Below the pieces are notes generated by a model that saw only the letters and a list, made by a program, of their open reading frames with translations, had not been told where the DNA came from and did not search any database. A stretch of DNA of 64,000 nucleotides. It comes from Geosiphon pyriformis uo1. Taxonomy: Eukaryota > Fungi > Glomeromycota. Both the position numbers and the translations under genes were made by a program. The stretch spans positions 868,001 to 932,000 of the forward strand of contig JAAOMT010000480.1 in the NCBI GenBank assembly GCA_016748015.1. Direction: 5' to 3'. Positions 2,818 through 53,223 of this stretch are shown here, piece after piece (within the stretch, counting starts at the first letter, position 1; every line of letters starts with the position of its first letter).

Positions 2818-3427
2818 TGTTACGAGATGGTTTTTTTGTTATATTTAATTGCTGATATTCCGCTTTAATTGCAATCAGTCTTTCGTGAGTTCCTCAATTC
2901 TATTTGTGTGATAATGTCACTGTTACACTGAAGGCTTTCTTTTTACTGTTGCGATGTAAGTTATTCTTTAATTCTTGATTGTTGTATGTGTTTATGTACT
3001 CCTTCTCAGAGACTGAACTGAAATCTACCCACTGTCTGGGGTCTTCTCTGAGGCTATCCTTGCAATTGCCTGATGTGTTTCTCTAATCTAGAAACACAGA
3101 ATGTTAATGGTCTTTAGCGCTTTTCTAATTCTCACAATAAAGCTTTTATCAATTAGTAACAAGGTAAATAATCTTGATCAAGGATTATTCTTCCAAGGGT
3201 TTCAGTTGATGAATGATAGTTTCATTCAATAAATAATACAAGTAAGTTTCTTAATACTTTGGGTTGTGATAGTTCCATTTTAAATATTTTTTTTCATTTC
3301 TTTTTGATTTTTAAAGGTTTCTTGGGATATTTAATTTGAAAGTATGATTTGATAAGTTATGATTTTTATTACTTGATTTTTTTTTTTCCCAATATTAAAA
3401 CTACTGTATATATACATGTTTGTAGTT
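2818..3427 (-). repeat. 3' LTR of the young element (partial, runs into assembly gap)
   Basis: About 97% identical to 7972-8355 over the 384 comparable bases (13 differences by manual count). Confidence 0.93.
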
Positions 3428-3558
3428 NNNNNNNNNNNNNNNNNNNNNNNNNNNNNNNNNNNNNNNNNNNNNNNNNNNNNNNNNNNNNNNNNNNNNNNNN
3501 NNNNNNNNNNNNNNNNNNNNNNNNNNNNNNNNNNNNNNNNNNNNNNNNNNNNNNNNNN

Positions 3559-6500
3559 TCTTATTTCTGATTTTCCATATGGTAGGAGCGTGATGAACTG
3601 CTCATTTTTAATTACTTCGCCTTTTTCCCCTATTGTTTCAGCGAAATTTGCTTCAATTCCTTTTCCTGTCGATCCGAAACCAAAAGTTCCTCTCGTTGTT
3701 TGTGACAATTTCTCACGATTTTCCACTGACACGAATTTCCCAATTTTTACCAATGATAGGAAAATTGCTTGTGCAATCTTTTCCTTAGATTCAATGGTAT
3801 AAGGCTTTTCTGAATTGTTCTGTAGCAAAACCATCAAATTTCCAGTGTATCTGGAGTTAATTACTCCTTCTTGAATGCTTATTCCTTTTTTCGCAAGACT
3901 TGATCATGACGCCATTTGAACCATTATTCCTGGCGGAATTTCAACCGCTATTTTTAGGTCGATTTTGGTGATGCTCCTGGGTGGTAACGTTGTGGATTGG
4001 TCTTCCAGATAATGTAGATCGAATTCGGCGTCGGTTGGATGGGCTCTTTCGGGTATTATTTCTAAGTGCCTGTTGTCGAAGTATTGGATGTCGGTCACCT
4101 GTTCTAGGTCGGTATAGGCTACAAATTTTTCTGACTCGGGACCATCAGGTGAGTCTTGTTGATTTATTGATTGATTTTGAGACTGCTGATTCTCAATTTC
4201 CATTTTTCTTTCTAAGTTCCTTTCGTCTTGACACTCTTCACAGCACTGACTTTGACACGGGATGAGACAGTTTTCACAGAGGTAAGTGTTGATTTGGACG
4301 AGGTATTGTTTTTGCTCTTGTTGAGTGGGGCATAGTTGTTGGTAGTAGTCCTGGAATTCGTCCACTGGGTCGAACATGTTGTAGCTGGCGACTTTGTCGG
4401 CTACTTCGGCTGACTCTTTTCAACATCATATTTCTTCGGTGGTTCCTCCTCTTACTTTGGCTTGTGTGGTGTTGTACAACTTGTCCTCGTTGTGTGGGTA
4501 GTGCTGTAGTCTTTTTAACGCTCTGTTGAACGCTGCTTCGAACGGCGTTCCTCCTCTTACCCAGTCACAAATGAGGATTGTGTATTGGCAAGTTGTGTCA
4601 CACGTTCCTCCTCTGCCTGGTAAGTCGTTCCAGTCGCACCCTCTTGGTAACGGTTCTTCACAAGCGAGGCACGGTTCCTCGTCCCATTTTCCGTGTCTTT
4701 CTAGGTAACTGTATTTTTCTTTGTTACAACGGTTACAATAGTAGTGGGTGGGGTTTCTTGGGTCTTCGTCCGGTGCGCTGTACGCAGTCATAGACGAGAG
4801 TTTCTTCTTGCAAACTGAGCATTCTAGCTTTGGTCTGCGTCGCTGGTGGTTTCTTCGTGAACTTACCTGGTTCCATTCGGATCTTTCTTCGCTGGTCCAC
4901 GTTGGTACGGCTGGTAGTTCTGTTCTTTGGTCATCAGCCCAAGAGAGCTGATAGGTTTCGATGACTGGTAGTGCTGGATTTTCCTCAAATTTGAAGGTAG
5001 GTTTTTGGTTGGCGCTGGGTTTTTGGAAGTGGCCACAGGTGGCTGGAATTTTGGCCTGGTGGCCATTATAATTGATCAGAAGCTCTTTGGTGGTCCAGTC
5101 TAGAGTGGCGTTGGCTTTTGTTAGCCAGTCATTCCCTACTAACACTTGATATTGTGTAGTGTCCATTACTAATACTTTTGTAGGTATTACTATGCCGTTA
5201 ATTTCGAAAGAGAATGAGTTGATTTCGCCATAAGGCAGCTTTGTACTTCCATTGGCTGTTATGATTTGGAATGTCGTGGCACGATCAACTTTGAAACCCA
5301 GTTGGTTTACTAGTTGAAGCGTTACGATGCTTCCAGCGGATCCGCTGTCTAAGATAAGTTTGATTGGGGTATTGTTTACAGTGGCTTCCGTATATATAGC
5401 AGTGATTGGGCATTTTTTGTCCAATGCTGCTCCACTGAACATAGTCTCGTTTTCCTCTAATTCAAAAGGAAAAATAGCTGCGAAGCTGCTATCTTCGGTG
5501 GCAACTGCTGGTGGTATTGTCTGGCTCAATTTGGAGGAATTTTTGGTTCTGTTTATGTTTCTACCGTCATTGTTTCCGATGATCAGGTTTTCCGGTATAT
5601 TAAGGTAAGTTTGTTGATAATTTTGGTAGTTTGGATTGGTTTGCTGATTGGTTCCGGCGCGGTTTGGATTCCTCTGGANNNNNNNNNNNNNNNNNNNNCT
5701 AAGATAAGTTTGATTGGGGTATTGTTTACAGTGGCTTCCGTATATATAGCAGTGATTGGGCATTTTTTGTCCAATGCTGCTCCACTGAACATAGTCTCGT
5801 TTTCCTCTAATTCAAAAGGAAAAATAGCTGCGAAGCTGCTATCTTCGGTGGCAACTGCTGGTGGTATTGTCTGGCTCAATTTGGAGGAATTCTTGGTTCT
5901 GTTTATGTTTCTACCGTCATTGTTTCCGATGATCAGGTTTTCCGGTATATTAAGATAAGTTTGTTGATAATTTTGGTAGTTTGGATTGGTTTGCTGATTG
6001 GTTCCGGCGCGGTTTGGATTCCTCTGGACCAACACGTTCTGGTTCTACATGGGCTGATTTCGGGCCTCGGGACGCCAATTCGGATTGACTATCATGGGCT
6101 GTTGCTGGTAAGCTCCTTGATTTTGATACGTGGTGGGATATTGGCGTGGTATTGGCGTGTACTGGTTTCTGGGCATTTGGGGTGGCGCGTAGTAATTATT
6201 TTCGTGTGCTTCCTGCATCATTCACGTTCGACATTGACTAATCAAATGTCCTACGCATTTGCAAAAATGGCAGGCGCATGTTTCTGTTCTGAATTCCTGG
6301 CGCGACGAGCGATTATTTCGACTGTTGCTGACTTCCTGGCTGCGTCTTTGGGGTGGTTGGTATGTATTTTTTCTCAGATCTGAGATGAGGTAACTTTCTA
6401 TTTTCTTAGAGAGTTCCTTCCCTAATCGCGTTACTCTTTTCTCTAATGTTTCTGTCTTATTTTCCTCCATTACCATGTTAACCATTTGACTATAGTTAGC

Positions 6501-7958
6501 TTCTTTCTTAGCCGATTCAAGGGCTCTGGTGAGCGTAACGGCTTCTGGTAAGAAATTAGGGTGGGCAGAGCGTACCCTTCCTAAAATGCTGCTTTTTAAT
6601 CCTCTAATAAACTGATTTAAAACCTGAGGATCAGTGTAGTATCCTTGTTCAATCACTTCAATCTGACGGTGAATTCGATTGAATCGAGCAAGGTATTGGG
6701 TGACAGTTTCATCAGTATTTTGCTTGATAGTATTGAATTCGTTCTGTAGTTGGATTACGGCGTTTGGGTCGCTAAAATACTCCAGGAGTGCATTTTTAAA
6801 TTCGGCAAAGCTCGTGGGTTTTGTTTCCAGGCTTTAATACCACGAGTTGGCTGTGCTTTTCAGGAAGAAAGGTAATGTTTGAATTGCTTTTTGGTCGTTC
6901 CAGTTATTTGCCTGGATGGCTTTTTGTGCTTCTCTGAGCCATGTGTGCACATCCGTTTCTTTTTCCTCTTCTGAGAAATCTGTTAGTCTTGCAATGTATG
7001 GTGTGGTTATTTTGTTGCCGTTTTCTGCTGGTGAATTTATTGGTCTAAGAGGAGGTGGGATGATATTTCCTTGAGTGTTCCTAAAGGTAGCTTCCCTTAT
7101 ATCTGGTTCTTCTTCTTGATCACGAGTTTCTTGGTTTTTGGACTGGCTGCTTGTTCCAGTGACTGGTCTTGTGATTGTTTTTTTGCTGGTCTCTTTTTCG
7201 GATTCTGATTCAGACTCCTCTTCATGGTTTTCAAATCCCGTTCTAAATTTTGGCTGAAAAAGAGGGTTTTGGAATAGTGATGAATATCCTCCTGTAATTG
7301 GTATGTCTCCCCAGTTACATTGTTTAATTTTAACAATATAACTAGGAGTTTTTGGCGTTTGTGAAGTTGATGTTGATGATAATGCAGCTCCTAATGGAAT
7401 TTGTATCTTATTTTCTGGTGAAAAATGGTATGATTTATCTTCTGGTGAATAAATACGTTGTTTCTTTATTGATTGAGTGACAGTTTTCTTTGGCGTTTGA
7501 GCTGGTGTTTTTAGTTTTTGCTGGTTACTTTCCTGATTAGTTTCTAAATTTTCTTTGGTTTTGTTGGTGCGTTCCCTAGTGTTTCCTGTGGATATTGGAA
7601 AATTTTCGTTGGCATATTGCTCAATTTCTCAATGGATTTTGACAATAGTTGCGGCTATTGCTGCTACTTCTTTTGTAGTGTATTGTGATAATTCTCTATA
7701 CAATCCAAGTTTTGCGCCATGTGGTTCTTCTTCCTTTCCTATATGATAATTTATTCTGGCGTTAATATAATAAGTGAGGGCAGATTCTGCTGGACAACAC
7801 CCTTCTGGTAATCCAAGATCACTTTGATTTTGTGTGTAAATAGCACGGCAGAATTCAAGAACAGTAAGATTAGGGGTTTTTGTCGCCACTTTTGTCTTTT
7901 CCTTTTTAGCAATGAATTATTGCTAATTATTATTTCTTTTTTGATTTTTTTTCTTCAT
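3559..7958 (-). pseudogene. gag-pol polyprotein (retrotransposon gag, CCHC knuckle, aspartic protease, Cys-rich domain, dUTPase); single frame broken only by nonsense codons
   Basis: ORF pieces starting at 7889, 6656, 6035/5763, 4377 and 3837 share one frame once the 350-bp assembly overlap is removed. CHFCKCVGHLISQC (CX2CX4HX4C) lies at ~6230-6270 and LILDSGSAGS at ~5350. Stops at 7629, 6222, 4426 and 3904 are TGA, consistent with CGA>TGA. Confidence 0.9.
3660..4060 (-). pseudogene. dut: dUTPase domain within the retroelement pol
   Basis: Trimeric dUTPase motifs: AHPTDAEFDL (I), S*SSL (II, SRS), GVINSRYTG (III, GVIDSGYTG), KIAQAIF (IV), RGTFGFGSTG (V). Confidence 0.92.
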
Positions 7959-29427: not shown

Positions 29428-31512
29428 ATGTCTTCAACTGCTCGAGATGACCAAAATTCATCCGGCTTTGATACCGATCAGAATACTGATGACTTAACAC
29501 ATGAATCTAGTCCCCTCCTTCAAAAAACGACGCCTTCAAGACCTTGGTACCGAACTCCTTCACCATATTGGCTCCTAATTGGACTTTTTTTCGTGGCATT
29601 AACTTGGGGTATTGGAAGCGTTATTCGTGTACAAATTTATATCAAAATCGTATGCAGACTTTATTATTCCTCGCAGCAAACCCCGTCGGCAATGCTTGCA
29701 TTTTATAACGGTTGGCAAGTTTTTAACAACAAAGAAAGCTTAGAAGATTTCCCACCAAATGAAAATTGTAATATCCCAGAAGTGCAAGCCCTCACTTCGC
29801 AAATGATGTTGGTGTTGAATTTGTGCGGTGCTTTACCTGGTAGGTGAAAATGCAGAAACAGATAATGGTTTACGATCCTCATTTTTGTGTAATGACAAAC
29901 AATGATATAATCGGAAGTTACACACATAATATTCGAAAAAACCAGGTTTCCATTGTAGAATGGACAAAAATAGTAGCACCCAGTTGATATAAATTCAATT
30001 TTTTCTAGCTATATTTGTCCTCGGAGCTTTGGGGTCCCTATCAGATCGAAAAGGACGACGCGTCGTACTTTTAATGTCCTTGGCCGGACTTACATTCAGC
30101 ATAGCGGTTCTTTTGGTAGTGGCAAGATATGACCAATATATTGATCCGCATTTATTAGTGATTGGCCCTTTAGTAGAAGGTTTCAGTGGTGGTTTATTTT
30201 CATTATTGTCTACATCCCAAGCATACATCAGTGATTGTACCACGGCAGAAAGAAGGTAATTGTAATTGATTAAATATATTTTCAAATGAATTTTTCGATT
30301 AAAATTAATTCATTTTTTGTCATAATAAAAGGAGCATAATTTTTGGCTGGCTTCAAGGAACCTTATTACTCGGGTTGTCAGTCGGCCCCTTAATCGGTGG
30401 TTGGATTGTAAAGGCCACAAATAGTCTCCTTTCGGTCTTCTATATTTCAATTGTGATCTTCGGTTTCTTTTTTCTATACCTACTTTTTGTAGTTCCCGAA
30501 TCACTATCGTTGGAAAAACGTGCTGCAAATGCCAAAGAACAACGTGACAAACAACGAGAATTATCTTTGAAATACACAAAATGGTGGCAAAAATATAATG
30601 TCTTTGAACCTTTGGCAATACTTCTTCCGAATAATAGCGTTTTATTCCCCAAAAAAGAGTTTAAAAATGATAAACCAATCGGTGGAAAATACTTATTCTT
30701 GAACTTGGTCATTATCAATGGGATTGTCGCGGCAGCAATATGGGGTATCAATGCAATATTCATCTTGTACACTACACTCAAATTCAATTGGGACGCTTTA
30801 GAACAAGGATATTTTTTATTCTTAATGTTTGGTAGTAGGGTTCTCATGTTAATTTTTGTGCTCCCGTTGCTTTCCAAGATTTTCAAAAAAAGCGATATGA
30901 AAGGAAAAAGAAATCAATTACCGAATCCAATGGCAATCGTGACGCCAGATGGTGATTCTATTTCCCCGGTACCGGTACAGGTCATCGAGGATTTTGATGA
31001 TTCACACAAAAGACGAGCATTAAAATTTGATATATGGATCATTCGAATTTCTCTAATCAGTGAAACGTTTCAGTTAATCGGATATGGAATGGTGCAAACT
31101 GGAATCGGATTTACATGTTGTGAGTAGAATTCTGAATATTTTTAGTACAATTAACAAAAATTAAAAACATATAAAATTTCCTTTAAATCTCAAAGTGAGT
31201 GGAATAGGAGCTTTTAGCGCGGTCTTGTCACCAACACTGAAATCGCTGATGACAAAACTTGTACCTGCTTCACAAATCGGCCAATTATTAGGGGCTTTAG
31301 CCGTGGTCGAATCATCCATGCGATTTCTATCACCTCTCATAATGAATGGCCTGTACAGTATAATGGTAACCAGCAACCCTAGTACGATTTGGTATTTCAT
31401 CGGCTTCTTAGTTTCTATTGGTTGTGTTCTATCCTTCGGAATTGGTTCACAAGAGAATCGTAAAGATCAAGATAAATTAAATTATCAAGAGATCGGTAGG
31501 ATCGTGGCCTGA
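29428..31512 (+). CDS. Major facilitator superfamily transporter (TetA/SLC46-like), 4 exons (~29428-29839, 30009-30255, 30332-31120, 31196-31512)
   Basis: MFS motif A GSLSDRKGRR, AYISDCT, GPLIGG and multiple TM helices. GT-AG introns join the ORF-track pieces. Confidence 0.92.
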
Positions 31513-33322: not shown

Positions 33323-36300
33323 CTATATTCCACCAGCACTAAAAAAGGCAACAATCGAATTTCTGGAGGCCCTTTTTTCGTGCATTGGGGTAGCGAGCGT
33401 ATTAGCTGGGCTTTTTGGTGGTAGAAATGTACCAGCTCCGTCTTCGGCGAAACCATTGATCAACATTCGTAAACCTTCTAGCTGAGAGCTCATACTTTCG
33501 CGAGCTTCTTCACTTTCAGCCAATTTCAATTTGTATTCGGAAAGGGTTTTTTCCATTTCGTCGACTCGTTTCGCAGTTTCACATTCAGTGGCGTTGCAAA
33601 CAAGTGAATGTTCATGATAACCACACATGGAATTACCATCCACATGCCCATAATCCGATAAAGATTTGATTGGTTCACTATTGGTTCTCGCCAAATGCTG
33701 TTTGGGTGATATTGGTGGGGGTGTAACGGAGGCACCGGTACCAACGAATAAACTCATAAACGAGACGCGTCTTGAAGCACGTTCTTGAACTTTATCGGCA
33801 TTATTATTTGAGAGGGGATCATGGGCTCCATAACCGTTGCCATAAGCATTGCCAATATCTTGCAATAATTTTACTTTTCCTTGCAATGCTTCCACTTGAT
33901 TTTTCAAATTATCATTTTCGTTGACTTTTTTCATAGCCTCCACTCTAAATTCTTTGAACTCGTGTTTCATGGAGTTTTGTTTATAAACTGCGGAAGCAGC
34001 TTCTTCATCAAGTCGTTCCACTTCTTGCTTCAGGAAAACATTCTTTTCTTGCAAGGCTTCTTGAGCGTCAAGAGCATCATGTAAACTAAATTGCAACTCT
34101 TCAACACGTTTTTGCAATTCATCATTTTCCTGCATTAACTCAAATTTCTCCATTTTAACTTGAATCAGCTCTTCGGTGATTTTGCTTTCATTGAGGGTTA
34201 CGCCTTTATGATCATCTGAAAGATCAATGGCATCAAAGTCCGACATTTCTGTCATAGGCGAGGTGCTGACTGTAAGAGTGGATGAGGTTGAAGAATTGGA
34301 AGCCGAAGAAGTAAATATTCGAGAGACAGACATAAAGGAGGGAGCAGAAACGCGACGATTTTTTGATTGGTCAACATCAACCATGACACCATTCACAATA
34401 TCTAAAGTGTGAGATTTGTTTGAAGCTTTTATTTTGTGTTGGTGTTTTAAATAGACTTCAGTTGATTGGCGTGGAGTGACATCAGCATCCTCTGATTGAA
34501 TCGTGGGTGCTAATGATGAATAAGCTGAAGCAACAGAAGCTCTCCTTGATGAGATACTTTCAGAATCATAATTTGATGCAATTGCAGACTCGAGGGATAG
34601 TATTGAGGATGTGACAGACATTCGCTTTTTTTCCTTTTCTAATTCACGTATGCGACTCCTGAGATTTTCAACTTCTGTTACCAAATCTATTTTTTCCATT
34701 TTCATATTTACTAACTGTTTTGTAATATCAGTATGTTCTTTTTGAAGTTCTGACAATGCGGTAACAAGATCTTCAATCTGTTGATGTAACATCGCATTGC
34801 TTGGAGTAGCGGATGGGGGTGGAGATGTAATAGCAGGCGCTAAGGTTTCACTATCGGAAGAAATCGAAGAAGTTTCACTTGATGTATTAACCAAGGATGA
34901 AAAAGAGCCAACAGATTGCTTGGCACTAGGAAACGCTGCAAGTGACCATCTCTTTGGCTTATTCGACTTTTCCTTGTTCTTTTTAGATTCATCATTTTTG
35001 GCCGATCTTCCAAACGATCCGTTGAAACGAACAGCTACTAATTCTTCAGCACGTTTCTTTTGCTCCTCTAATTCCTTTAAATAACAATTCGATAATTCGT
35101 CCATTTTAGGCTTTGTGATACATGTACTGAGAGCCATAGCATCTTTAATTAGACCAGTCGGTTTGTTATCATACGCGTCGTAAAGCTTTGTGGTAAGGAA
35201 ATCCAATAGATCTTCAAATTCTCCCAATTCAAGTAAATGTTCTTGATTCTTTTGTAACAATGCAATCGCCACTCGCATGATGGTTTCAGGAGCACCTTCA
35301 GCAAAGACCACATCATATATCCGTAAAACCAGGGGCAAAGGATAGGTATAAGCAAACAGTGACAAAAACCATTGAGAAGCAAACATTGCTGCGTGTACGG
35401 CATGAAGTTGAAAATGCGAATGAAGTTTTGGAAGAATTTGTGAAAGAAGAGTAGAAAATTGGTAGAGACGCAATTGAAGTCCTTCCATATTTAGAGTGAA
35501 CATTGATCGCATATCGTATGTCTCCATTAAACTGATGTGACATAAATAGATTGGGGAAAAAATATTTTTTATTAGAAAAAAGTTAATGACCATGAAAAAA
35601 AGGAAATCCCTAGAGACAAATAAAAGAAAATTTTTATTTGAGCCTACCGTACAAAAACGGAAAACGCTTGGGGTTCGGTCATCTAGGTTCAAGAAATTTT
35701 GTTGCATGGGTTTATTGTCGAATATGTATTCACGGGATGTAAAAAAAAACGAAGATCTCAAGTTTTTGCAAAAATAAATGTTAAACTTACATTCATCACT
35801 AATGGACCGACCAAAAAACCCAAACCTTGACAATAACCCACTAAAGGGTCATAAAGACTGTAAGCCCTCAAAACGTTCCACAACATTGTTTGTCCCTCAC
35901 CGTTTTCCTCTTTAAACATATCTATATGAGGAAAAGTTCGAGCCAAATCTCGTTGAATAATTTTCTCATAAGGAGAAGACTCCATGAGTAATTGTGAATA
36001 CATTGTCTCTAAATAGGTCGATGATGCTTGACACATTGATTGCCAGATCAAACCTCTTAGTTTCGCAGGTACACCTTGTTGCAGTTTCGCGGTAAGTAAA
36101 TGTGGAAGCCTAGTTGCAACTCCCGTATAATCTTGTATTAATGCTGTCCAAAATTCCCAATCAATGGTTGGAGTTTCACCATCTTCCTCTTCACATTCAG
36201 AAACAGGGGATTCTATATCGAACTTATCATTTGTAGGACTCGTGCTATCATCAATGAGTGATTGAACAGTCTCAAGGTTTGCTTTCAACACATTAGATTC

Positions 36301-43137: not shown

Positions 43138-44642
43138 ATGATTCTTTTCTTATTATTCTTTGTCTTTAGTGTTATCAAATGTTCGTCAAATATTGAGATC
43201 TATTCAGAAAATTTAGTTCCATATCATAATTTCAATTTTTCCTCTCAAGAAGCAAAATTTTTTAACTCTAATATCAAAATTTTAAACGTAAAGCGGGTTC
43301 CATTGTCTCATCCACCTAGACAAGAGATGTTACCTTCTACAAGAATTTTGGATTTTTTTAGACAAATTGCATTAATTGCAAATCATGCATATTGCCTACC
43401 AGGAAATGCTAGTGGAATGAGAGTTCTGAAAGGTAAAAAAAATTTAAAAATAGCTATTTTGAAAATAACTTTTTGTCACCCCTTTTATAAATTTTGATTA
43501 ATTTTTAGCTTCTCATGGATTTTATGTGTATAGGAAAAGATTTCAGAATTATCAAGCTAAGCTACATGTAATTGTATATTTTAAGGGAAAGGTAAGGAAA
43601 AAGGATGTCAAAAATAATTATTTCTTGGTTAACAATAAATCTTATATTTTTAAGATTTAAAACTACTTATAATCAAAGGTGGTTTTCTACATAGATATTA
43701 AAAAAAGGAGAATGGTCAAAAAGACAAACAAATCTTGTCCCTTTTGAATTATTCGGCTCAGAAACTAACCCCGAAATACTTGTTGATGAGGAATGGCAAC
43801 GAGATACCTTGAAGATGTGGCCATTATTACTTCTCAGAATCTTCAAGGCTCTGAGGACCCCGCGTGGTCATCAGGATGTTGAATCAATTTATTTTATTGG
43901 ACATGCAATTGGTGGAGGTAATATTCTTCGAATGAATTTCTTTACCTATAAAAACTTTCAACTCTCAAATTGTCTAATAAAATTTTTAGCTTACGCGACC
44001 ATCGCAGCAGAATATTTCCGCCTATTCACAAGTGTTAAGACTGAAGAAGAAAATTATCCTCTATTTGACGATCTAAAAACTCGTGTATTTACTTTTGGTG
44101 CTCCACGAATCGGAAATGAGGTTTTTGCGCAACTAATAAATGAATATAGTTTCAAAGATTATCGTTTCACCTACGGAAATGATCATGTTCCACATTTCCC
44201 GCGAAAAAACATTGGAAATCAGTTATTGGTTCATTCCGAAACTGAGATTTGGATTGAGGCTTCTGAAAAGTGTAATTGTGTTCCCTTCCCGAAAGAAACC
44301 AAAATAGAAGAACAGGAAACTCCGGAGCAAGCAATAAAATATTATCGATGTCCAGGGACTTTTACCTTAACATCACCGAAATTCACTGCTCCCAGACCAA
44401 AAGAAAGATTACTTTTCCCGGTAAATTTTTTATTAGCTGGTGAAAATCAGGTAAGAAAAAATATGAATCTCATGTAAATAAAATGACTAATTTTTTTCTT
44501 TCACTCATAACGTTTTTTCTCCTTTTAGCAATGCAGTATGAGTCAAAATTTTGAAACCATTTCAGACTTCTTTTTTCATCAAGGACCTTATTTTGGGATT
44601 AAGATGGGCGATTGCAGACATCATCCAGTTTATATTGAATGA
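43138..44642 (+). CDS. Secreted class-3 lipase homolog with catalytic Ser replaced (GHAIGG), multi-exon
   Basis: N-terminal signal peptide, AYC, VYFKG, FIGHAIGGAYA, TFGAPRIGN, NDHVPHFP, EIWI, HQGPYFG; canonical introns. Confidence 0.88.
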
Positions 44643-45692: not shown

Positions 45693-46127
45693 ATGAAAAA
45701 GATGTCTTATGCTCAATCTTTTACCTTTTTTATGACTTTCTTCCTTCTATGTACTGTCTTATTCACTTCTGCTGTTCCAGTCCTTCACAAGTTTAACCAT
45801 TTGCAAACTCTCGGTAAACGTGGCATCATTCCTAATTCTGCAGTCCGATCCGGCGCTCTTACGGGAAAAATTGTTCCAGCTCGACTAATATCCCCAATCT
45901 TGGGAACTCCAGCTACGATCAATGGATTTCCCAAGCCAAAATTTGGGCCAACGACCAGTTTCTGTGAGTGTGCTAATTGTGGCAAAACTCCTGGTAGCTG
46001 TGGCAAATTAATTTTAGGTAGTCCGTTAGTAGGGCCAGGTATTAGTGCTGGGATAGGTCCTTTGCCACTTGCTGGTTTGAGCAATCTTGGGTTAAAGACT
46101 GGAGCTAATATTGGAAAATTTATTTGA
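45693..46127 (+). CDS. Small secreted protein, 144 aa: signal peptide, KR (Kex2) site, cationic Gly/Pro-rich mature region with CxCxxC...C
   Basis: Intronless GC-normal ORF in AT-rich flanks. Hydrophobic N-terminus ending TSA|VP, then LGKR|GIIP and FCECANCGKTPGSC. Confidence 0.8.
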   Translation: MKKMSYAQSFTFFMTFFLLCTVLFTSAVPVLHKFNHLQTLGKRGIIPNSAVRSGALTGKIVPARLISPILGTPATINGFPKPKFGPTTSFCECANCGKTPGSCGKLILGSPLVGPGISAGIGPLPLAGLSNLGLKTGANIGKFI

Positions 46128-46425
46128 ATCTTATGTGTGAAAATGATAATATGTCGAAATAATGATTCGGCAAAAAAAATTCAAAATAAATAGTCAGTAA
46201 CAATAATTCTAATAAAGAATACTAAAGAAATTTTATTTATCTTGAAGAAAGATAGCACTTTTTATTTCAGTTGCAACTTGCAATTTCTCGGATGAAGAAA
46301 AGATTTATCAATTCATTCTAGACTCACTAAATTAACTTTGAATTTATTCAAGATTAAAGCGTAAACATGAAATCTAGCTTTATTAAAAATTTCATCAAAA
46401 CTTCGAGTCTAATGCCATATCTCAG

Positions 46426-46937
46426 TTAGATGAAGTCATCCTCAAAGTCATCTCTTCTTCCTCTGATTCTTCTTTCTCTTCCGTATCTACTGTAACCATA
46501 TCTGCTTCCATATCTTCTTCTCCGTCTATAACTCGGACGTCGGTAATATCTTGATCGTCTTCGAACGTTTTCACGCTCATATCGTTCTCGTGAATAAATT
46601 TGGGCTGGAGTAAGACGGTCTTCAGTGGCGGGCTCAGGAACTGTTAAATATGTAAACAAGGGTGAAATTCGCGATTGAACCGATGCTCGAAACGAAAAGA
46701 AAATATACCTTCGGCTGATAGGTCCGTATCCCAATTTCCAGCTGAATCTATCTGATTCCAAGCGATTTGATCTGGTGAAACGCTGTCAATGAAATTTGGG
46801 TAATCTAGTTCGGATTTGGTCGGGTAGGTCACATCAGATTTGTACGGATCCGGGGCAGCAATAGAATTTGCTTTCGATTGGAGGGTGGCAAACGTGAAGA
46901 GTAGGATATAAAACACGAATATTCTAAGAGATTTCAT
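46426..46937 (-). CDS. Small secreted protein, 147 aa, 2 exons (46937-46709, 46640-46426): signal peptide, acidic region, Arg/Tyr-rich protamine-like domain, acidic tail
   Basis: A 68-bp intron GTATAT...TTAACAG (46708-46641) joins ORFs 46644..46937 and 46426..46761 in frame (SAE-V-PEPATED); total 444 nt. Confidence 0.82.
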
Positions 46938-47208
46938 TTTTGAAGGTTAAATATTTGTGAAATTGTGATTTCAGGTTTAATATTATTTTAAAATTGTAAT
47001 GTCAATGAGAATAAAGAAGCTATGAGGCAGGGTTTATTTATACCATAATACAAATGTTTCCGGTTGAAACTCCTCTCAATATTCTAGTCTTTGGGCATCG
47101 ATATAAAAAGAAAGATTTAAAAGTTTGATTGAGGAATGGAACTTTGCGCGTTTTTTCTAACGATAAATTACGCTTTTGGCGGATTTAAAAATTTTCGGCT
47201 GATTGAAA

Positions 47209-51848: not shown

Positions 51849-53223
51849 TTATTGAGGGCACTTGTCCATTATGTATCCGAAATAGGGTCCAAAATGATCG
51901 TCTTGATTAGGTTTTTTAAAACTTCTATGATCGAGGTATCTTCGATACGCGAAATTTGCATTACAAACCTATTTGAATAAATTTAATTAAATACAAAGAC
52001 ATAATTTGGCTTTAGCAGGCGAAAATGCTTACTGGATTTGGATTCAGACTTCCGATCTGGTTGCATCGGTAGATTTTTGGATAGTTCAACTCACTTGAAT
52101 CTACTATGGTAAAAGCAGGTGAACATTGACATTGATCAGGTTGCAATGGAATCCAATATTCGGTACTCATGGGTACGTATTTTTCCTCCATATTATCATG
52201 TCTTATACCAAAACGAGGAAATTGTGGGACGTAATCATCACCATACGTAACACGATAGTGCTCAATTTGTGAGTACGCAAACGAGACAAATTCCATATTG
52301 CCAATGCTAGGCATACCAAATGTGACGACAATAGGTTTAACAGCATGTTTATTAGCAAATTCCAAAGCTGCAAATATTGCATAAACTTAAATCAAATATA
52401 AAATAAGTTTCACGGAAAACATACTTTTGCAATTGAAAACTTTGATTGAAGGGCATTATGTTGAAAACTTACTTCCACCTCTTCCAAAAGCAACAAAGGA
52501 AAACAAAGACTTTCTATCAAGAAACCCCTTTTGAGATTCCAAAATTTTCATTTTACTCCAAAAATGCTTTTGTGCATTTTGCCAGATGTTGTAATACTTT
52601 TTTTCAACTAAAGTCCCAGCAACGTGTTTATACTGAATAGCAGTCCATGCAGTTGGATCTTTAAACCATGAAAAATATTTGAGTTCGGTGGCTCGAAACT
52701 TTATTACAAATTTCTGAGAGGTGTCTCCGATAGGGTTTAAATCTTTTTCTATGTCCACTTTTAAAATATTAAATCTGTTAGTAAAGCTTGAAAAAAGATA
52801 TTATTGATAAAAGTTTTTACCATAAAGTAATCGGGCTAAAGTTTTTGACTTTCCATCCAAACAGGCTGCTTCACTAGCGTGGTATGCTGAATCTGCAAGT
52901 AAACCAAGCAAATCCTTATTCTCTATTAAAATCTTTTCTGAAGTTTCTGTTCTTCGCATTAATTGTAAATATGAAATGCTCTTGACTGACTGAGTTTGAG
53001 ATAAACCCTTTAATGATTGCAGATTATTGATTTGATCTTTGATAATCAAAGTGCTTTTATTTCGTCTAATAAAATTCCCTATGATTTTATTTTTATCATC
53101 CGCGATATTCTGTGAAAATTTCACGCCGTCCCTGCTGTTTGATTTTAATTGTATTGAAAGGTAACTCATTAAGGTAAATATAGAGCATAGGAAGAAAATC
53201 AATAAAATCAAAAATATATTCAT
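51849..53223 (-). CDS. Secreted or anchored class-3 lipase homolog with catalytic Ser replaced (AFGRGG), 4 exons
   Basis: Hydrophobic N-terminus; FSFVAFGRGG|IYAIFAALEF at the nucleophile elbow; TFGMPSIGN, YRVTYGDDYVPQFP, EYWI, DHFGPYFG, as in the 43138 paralog. Confidence 0.85.

Follow-up and report, generated by a model that had tools for sequence, protein, structure and literature searches.

On the minus strand of a 64,000-nucleotide stretch of the Geosiphon pyriformis genome (the window), positions 46426-46937 probably hold a real two-exon gene. We put at about an even chance what we regard as the best explanation of the sequence, namely that the gene is found only in Geosiphon and specifies a 147-residue, Cys-free, disordered secreted precursor that is cut by a kexin at its runs of Arg. 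This reading is ranked first because the predicted protein carries five polybasic sites of the kexin type and because the genome contains a kexin-like gene; next comes an intact cationic peptide, followed by a cation-pi adhesive or coacervate. We infer that the product is secreted and processed; outside the cell it may take part in signalling or in interactions with the symbiont or the wall.

Structure of the gene and choice of acceptor

Two overlapping open reading frames are found at the locus, both on the minus strand, at 46644-46937 (97 aa) and 46426-46761 (111 aa). The first-pass annotation had joined them through a canonical 68-bp intron into a single protein of 147 aa, and its coordinates and GT-AG boundaries were reproduced. 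The donor is AAG/GTATAT at 46708 and the acceptor TTTAACAG/TT, ending at 46641; the codon divided by the intron is G/TT (Val), and joining 229 nt to 215 nt gives a computed frame of 147 codons plus a stop. The features to which we refer below are as follows.

47035..47042, minus strand: TATA-box-like TATAAATA, 98 nt 5' of the ATG
46709..46937, minus strand: coding part of exon 1, 229 nt, phase 1, comprising the start codon, the signal-peptide part and 53 residues of the acidic region
46869..46937, minus strand: coding part of the predicted signal peptide, 23 aa, MKSLRIF...LQSKA, with a predicted cut after S-K-A
46641..46708, minus strand: predicted intron, 68 nt, GT-AG, GTATAT...TTTAACAG
46426..46640, minus strand: coding part of exon 2, 215 nt, of which the last three (46428-46426) are the TAA stop
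46561..46640, minus strand: disputed 80 nt, exon in the 147-aa model and intron in the GenBank model
46559..46560, minus strand: alternative acceptor AG (cgttcgAAG/AC) used by the 121-aa GenBank model, whose stop is TGA 46424-46422
46453..46590, minus strand: Arg/Tyr-rich core, 46 aa with 22 R, 8 Y, 4 S, 4 G and 4 E
46429..46452, minus strand: C-terminal acidic octapeptide DDFEDDFI, directly after an RR site, net charge -5
46379..46384, minus strand: AATAAA, 42 nt 3' of the stop, a weak signal in AT-rich DNA

The open frame coincides with an island of elevated GC content (0.38-0.47 over 46950-46430, with limits that match the ORF and flanks of 0.20-0.31), and exon 1 has a GC content of 0.43 as compared with 0.28 upstream of it. 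The island, together with a GenBank gene call that an independent pipeline made from the same ATG, indicates that the locus is more than a product of chance. A start context is present at the ATG (46937), but like the TATA and AATAAA motifs it is a weak signal: TATAAA occurs once within the 200 nt upstream of the ATG, in a genome of 29% GC.

The GenBank entry at the locus is a hypothetical protein, G9A89_017856 [Geosiphon pyriformis], of 121 aa. It shares the start codon and its first 76 residues are identical to the exon 1 product, after which it continues as DDQDITDVRVIDGEEDMEAD... because its second half is the +1 frame of the purine-rich Arg/Tyr DNA, read as Asp/Glu. The entry implies an intron of 150 nt (46708-46559). 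Were it correct, the gene would encode a secreted, strongly acidic protein of 121 aa, and the Arg/Tyr frame would be an accident of purine-rich DNA. We consider this unlikely, even though it is the deposited annotation and the acidic frame stays open as far as its TGA, on account of the properties of the two introns and of the DNA over which they differ.

The introns were compared with a reference set of 25 Geosiphon introns that were placed by homology in actin-family, HSP70 and tubulin genes and whose junctions restore conserved protein sequence. The anchored introns are 60-319 nt long, with a GC content of 0.273 +/- 0.055 (range 0.15-0.36) and a pyrimidine content at positions -20 to -4 of 0.65 +/- 0.14; their donors are of the GTA/GTG type, GTATAT among them, and their acceptors are TAG (17), CAG (5) or AAG (3). 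The 68-nt intron (GC 0.35, T 0.43, pyrimidine tail 0.65, acceptor CAG) lies within the range of the set on all measures. The 150-nt intron is compatible with the set in its AAG acceptor, which 3 of the 25 share, and in its length, but its GC content of 0.43 is higher than that of every anchored intron (maximum 0.36; z = +2.8), its pyrimidine tail (0.35; z = -2.1) and its T tail (0.18) each match the lowest value in the set, and splicing would have to ignore six AGs that come before its acceptor.

The 80 nt that only the GenBank intron removes (46640-46561) look coding, which counts further against that model. Their GC content, 0.49, is the highest in the locus; read in the Arg/Tyr frame (frame A), GC1/GC2/GC3 is 0.73/0.50/0.27; and the mean ln RSCU is +0.18 in frame A, as against -0.29 and -0.20 in the other frames. 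Over the 132 nt that the two models share, synonymous codon use is slightly better in the acidic frame (+0.09 versus -0.06 for the Arg/Tyr frame), a point in favor of the GenBank model.

A recoding test bears on which of the two frames has been under selection. In this test the protein of one frame was held fixed, its codons were redrawn from Geosiphon usage, and the other frame was scored as open or closed. With the Arg/Tyr protein fixed, the acidic frame was open in 95% of draws, whereas with the acidic protein fixed, the Arg/Tyr frame survived in 1.8% of draws (7% if codons were drawn uniformly). The asymmetry arises because, in a stretch that is 69% purine, none of seven TAY codons has mutated to TAR. 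The test favors selection on the Arg/Tyr frame, which explains the presence of two open frames about 50-fold better (12-fold with uniform codons). In addition, the RYG-encoding units described below differ from one another at two positions, and both differences are synonymous in frame A and non-synonymous in the acidic frame (frame B).

Thus, the 68-nt intron conforms to Geosiphon introns, and the coding statistics of the locus agree with it, better than does the public 121-aa model, and on these grounds the 147-aa model is supported. We think it fairly likely that this model holds over the alternatives; what probability remains is divided between the GenBank model, with its small share, and the absence of a functional gene or retention of the intron. 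G9A89_017856 most likely uses a wrong acceptor and hence presents a 3' half in the wrong frame.

The predicted protein and the search for relatives

The string MKSLRIFVFYILLFTFATLQSKA, proposed as a signal peptide, is an exact match to the exon translation. Judged by rules of thumb for the n-, h- and c-regions, it has K2 and R5 in its n-region, a hydrophobic core of 14 residues (I6-L19) and S-K-A at -3/-1, so that these simple rules bear out the proposal. Next comes a region of 70 aa with 13 D/E and 3 K/R (19% acidic, net charge -10) that is richer in Ser, Pro, Asp and Tyr. It had been described as an Asp/Glu-rich segment of about 60 aa; an acidic segment is indeed present, but at 70 aa and 19% D/E it is not strongly rich in these residues. 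The 46-aa core follows, in which 22 Arg and 8 Tyr were counted exactly as in the first-pass annotation, with the same exon string. Its composition is R 48%, Y 17% and G 9% and its net charge +18. Five polybasic sites, all consisting of Arg only, punctuate the core in the order RRR, RR, RRRRR, RR and RR, the first of them 9 residues inside it and the other four farther downstream. The sequence AGATAYGGN occurs three times (46515-46507, 46503-46495 and 46488-46480, minus strand) and encodes R-Y-G each time. The acidic tail DDFEDDFI agrees with the exon 2 translation, and the succession that had been put forward, from a signal through an acidic part and a cationic core to an acidic tail, is real in the 147-aa translation. 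The 147-aa product contains neither Cys nor an N-glycosylation sequon.

Single-sequence AF2 models were built for each exon product on its own (mean pLDDT ~62-64). They show a helix at residues 3-23, corresponding to the signal peptide (pLDDT ~84), and one further helix, over TPAQIYSRERYERENVRRRSRY (pLDDT ~72-74), the remainder being coil of low confidence. The absence of Cys, the low complexity of the sequence and the small number of helices in the AF2 models are together consistent with a mature product that is a disordered polyampholyte, although low AF2 confidence in a model made without an alignment is no proof of disorder.

Exon 1 and exon 2 were used as separate queries in homology searches, in which relatives were sought as predicted proteins. 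Among 5.8 billion clustered proteins, exon 1, both alone and as residues 1-76 of the 121-aa protein, matched only itself, and exon 2 (region 42-111 of its ORF) matched nothing. The one phmmer match of exon 2 among 1.84 billion representatives, a 1213-aa animal-type Sushi/CCP repeat protein, was weak and fell in six repeats, and it was dismissed as compositional. Neither exon had relatives in the ESM Atlas or in metagenome contigs, and no paralogue of either was found in the Geosiphon genome itself (128.3 Mb in 792 contigs as searched; the published genome has 129 Mb in 795 scaffolds and is 29% GC [PMC9453076]). The exon products had no Pfam domain matches, and a repeat search at the locus yielded nothing that links it to other sequence. 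Protein language-model recognition scores were 1458 and 1689; 91% of known families score 2300 or more. The original remark that no family was recognized was therefore borne out by blank protein, metagenome, own-genome and Pfam searches, and the gene is probably an orphan, present in single copy and restricted to G. pyriformis. The possibility that the product is an SR protein or a protamine was rejected: it has a signal peptide, the core has 4 Ser, and there is neither an RRM or other Pfam domain nor a homologue.

The strict orphan status, with no paralogue in its own genome, the low sequence complexity and the language-model scores are what would be expected if there were no functional protein gene at the locus, that is, if the frame were open by chance, had arisen de novo very recently, belonged to a gene in decay, or yielded an intron-retained product of 97 aa (ending at TAA 46646-46644). 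We hold this to be unlikely as well, though slightly less so than the GenBank model. The GC island matches the ORF; the signal-like N-terminus, the canonical intron signals, the codon-position pattern and the asymmetry between frames point to selection on the Arg/Tyr frame; and orphan status is normal for small secreted proteins of fungi, most of which are orphans (PMC7105643).

Proposed processing of the precursor and its possible roles

In the account that we prefer, a kexin-processed precursor, removal of the signal peptide would leave the acidic N-terminal part (70 aa), the Arg/Tyr core (46 aa) and the acidic tail (8 aa), with the acidic flanks shielding the basic core in transit. A kexin-type convertase in the Golgi would then cut some or all of the five Arg-only sites, the most canonical-like of which is RR/DD, just ahead of the tail (compare KR/EA and KR/DA). 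The exported species would be an acidic pro-fragment, the pieces SRYY, PSY, YGSRYGYSRYGRE (13 residues) and IRG, and the octapeptide DDFEDDFI, instead of one peptide of 46 aa. A candidate for the enzyme is a Geosiphon proprotein convertase, recognized by its P-domain (G000:C608:604583-604753, minus strand; E = 2.7e-12) in an open frame of 468 aa. KEX2 has a preference for Lys-Arg. Because the sites in the core are Arg-only, and one of them has Pro at P1', the extent of cleavage is uncertain and the core may survive in part. Fungal KEX2 sites are generally KR or RR and rarely KK (PMC6339444), and the RR sites of MiSSP8 are cut by KEX2 in vitro (10.1101/218131). With these sites in the core and a kexin-like gene in the genome, the core is no less likely to be cut into short peptides than to be released as an intact "protamine-like" peptide.

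MiSSP8, a symbiosis protein of Laccaria bicolor with DW[K/R]R repeats (10.1101/218131), resembles the Geosiphon protein in being small, secreted, Cys-poor and lineage-restricted and in having several Arg-Arg sites in its C-terminal half. In MiSSP8 these sites are cut by KEX2 in vitro to give acidic or aromatic peptides of 3-6 residues (10.1101/218131). The Geosiphon protein, in contrast, has no sequence similarity to MiSSP8 and no DWRR motif, its fragments are not copies of one peptide, and its Arg content is far higher. [quoted passage not shown] By definition, KEPs contain three or more near-identical repeats with KEX2 sites between them (PMC6339444). The Geosiphon product has the signal peptide, as judged by the n/h/c rules of thumb and the AF2 helix at 3-23, but its five sites, all of the RR type and none KR, do not separate repeats: the pieces between them (SRYY, PSY, YGSRYGYSRYGRE, IRG and DDFEDDFI) differ in sequence, unlike those of classical Kex2-processed precursors, and the three RYG units all lie inside one piece. 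Lacking three near-identical repeats, it falls outside the KEP definition.

The SP7-like family (PMC11333574) and GLOIN707 also combine a signal peptide with a hydrophilic, disordered, basic region, and SP7-like genes have an intron just 5' of the hydrophilic region, as does the Geosiphon gene, though there is no alignable sequence on which positional homology could be based. GLOIN707 is of similar size (135 aa as compared with 147 aa; PMC11085264) with no detectable homology. [quoted passage not shown] The authors of the family did not find SP7-like genes in the Archaeosporales, the order to which Geosiphon belongs (PMC11333574). A further difference from nuclear effectors of the SP7 and GLOIN707 type is that Geosiphon's known partner lacks a nucleus. 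In architecture, the nearest analogues are MiSSP8 and those effectors of arbuscular mycorrhizal fungi that, like GLOIN707, are small, disordered and basic.

In the precursors of defensins and cathelicidins the cationic peptide is preceded by an anionic propiece, and tracts rich in Arg serve as nuclear localization signals or cell-penetrating motifs. The first-pass annotation had proposed a single mature cationic peptide of 46 aa. On that proposal the acidic region would be a propiece and the Arg/Tyr peptide, left intact, would be an antimicrobial, cell-penetrating or nucleic-acid-binding effector that acts on the Nostoc endosymbiont or on a plant nucleus. As with precursors of cationic antimicrobial peptides and with the NCR peptides of legumes, the signal is followed by an anionic and then a strongly cationic part (here 23 aa; 70 aa with 13 D/E and 3 K/R, net -10; and 46 aa with 22 R, RRRRR included, and 4 E, net +18), and Geosiphon, too, keeps an intracellular bacterial partner. 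There is also precedent among arbuscular mycorrhizal fungi, which secrete small disordered nuclear effectors bearing nuclear localization signals, for example the nucleolar GLOIN707 (135 aa; PMC11085264). What makes an intact peptide an unlikely product, and leaves the proposal unsupported, is above all the set of five Arg-only kexin-type sites inside the core, in a genome with a kexin-like gene: cutting at these internal sites would be expected to break the core up on its way through the secretory pathway (compare 10.1101/218131). Antimicrobial precursors have a single maturation site; here no single processing site marks the junction of the acidic and basic parts, the first polybasic site being 9 residues into the core and four more following. 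Nor does the core have the amphipathic or Cys-stabilized design typical of antimicrobial peptides, and no relatives were found in protein or metagenome searches. A plant-nucleus target has no obvious basis, since the known partner of Geosiphon is a cyanobacterium; with a prokaryotic partner a nuclear localization signal would have no target.

A more specific conjecture is that the Arg/Tyr core, whole or as the 13-residue YGSRYGYSRYGRE, enters the Geosiphon symbiosome and binds the surface, the nucleic acids or the ribosomes of Nostoc, thereby controlling its growth or differentiation. We regard this as a long shot. If true, a core delivered to the symbiosome would be a fungal, Cys-free equivalent of the peptides with which legume and insect hosts control their bacterial endosymbionts.

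Adhesive peptides of the mussel foot protein 3 type are small, secreted and rich in Arg, Tyr and Gly. The Geosiphon protein is likewise small, secreted and dominated by Arg, Tyr and Gly, with R-Y-G motifs, though mussel foot protein 3 is unrelated to it in sequence and comes from another kingdom. The core might accordingly drive cation-pi coacervation or Tyr cross-linking in an extracellular material that glues or hardens the wall or the cyanobacterial interface. The composition of the core, with its RYG repeats, would suit such a role, and blocks of opposite charge in one chain would favor self-coacervation. We nonetheless consider a material protein improbable, almost as much so as delivery to the symbiosome: the searches revealed no sequence relationship to proteins of this kind, the gene is short and single-copy, and the polybasic sites point to cleavage.

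Genomic neighborhood and significance

The gene is arranged tail-to-tail with a neighbor at 45693-46127 (plus strand), a single-exon ORF of 144 aa. Its N-terminus is hydrophobic and resembles a signal peptide, a kexin-type LGKR site occurs after roughly 42 residues, and the part beyond that site is rich in Gly, Pro and Leu and contains four Cys. The neighbor has no Pfam matches, and the idea that it is a diverged copy of the Arg/Tyr gene was rejected when a comparison showed the two sequences to be unrelated. Both small secreted genes are flanked by multi-exon genes resembling Lipase_3 (PF01764), at 43138-44477 (plus strand) and 52012-53223 (minus strand), which point inward. The nucleophile motif of class-3 lipases is G-H-S-x-G; the gene at 43138-44477 has GHAIGG at this position, which suggests that its product is a serine-less pseudo-lipase.

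Elsewhere in the window, upstream of this islet of secreted genes, are an exon for an MFS transporter (30375-31127, plus strand) and a gene for a RabGAP-TBC protein (33323-35833, minus strand), both of an ordinary housekeeping type. The segment 22000-26000 is extremely AT-rich (GC 0.10-0.12, as compared with a genome mean of 0.29). A GC-rich block with long ORFs (3300-6700, minus strand; GC 0.40-0.43) includes an ORF of 445 aa (4426-5763) with an aspartyl protease domain of the retroviral/Ty3 type and is, judging by its sequence, the remnant of a fungal LTR retrotransposon.

Geosiphon is related to the arbuscular mycorrhizal fungi and is the only fungus known to house cyanobacteria inside its cells. 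Secreted proteins specific to this species are therefore a natural place in which to search for factors that manage the partnership. Since the public model probably encodes the wrong C-terminal half, acidic rather than Arg/Tyr-rich, effector or secretome mining that relied on it would mis-describe the protein. The protein is probably one more orphan among small secreted proteins, functionally not set apart from them so far, but it would be inexpensive to test, and its extreme composition and kexin-type sites recommend it as a candidate.
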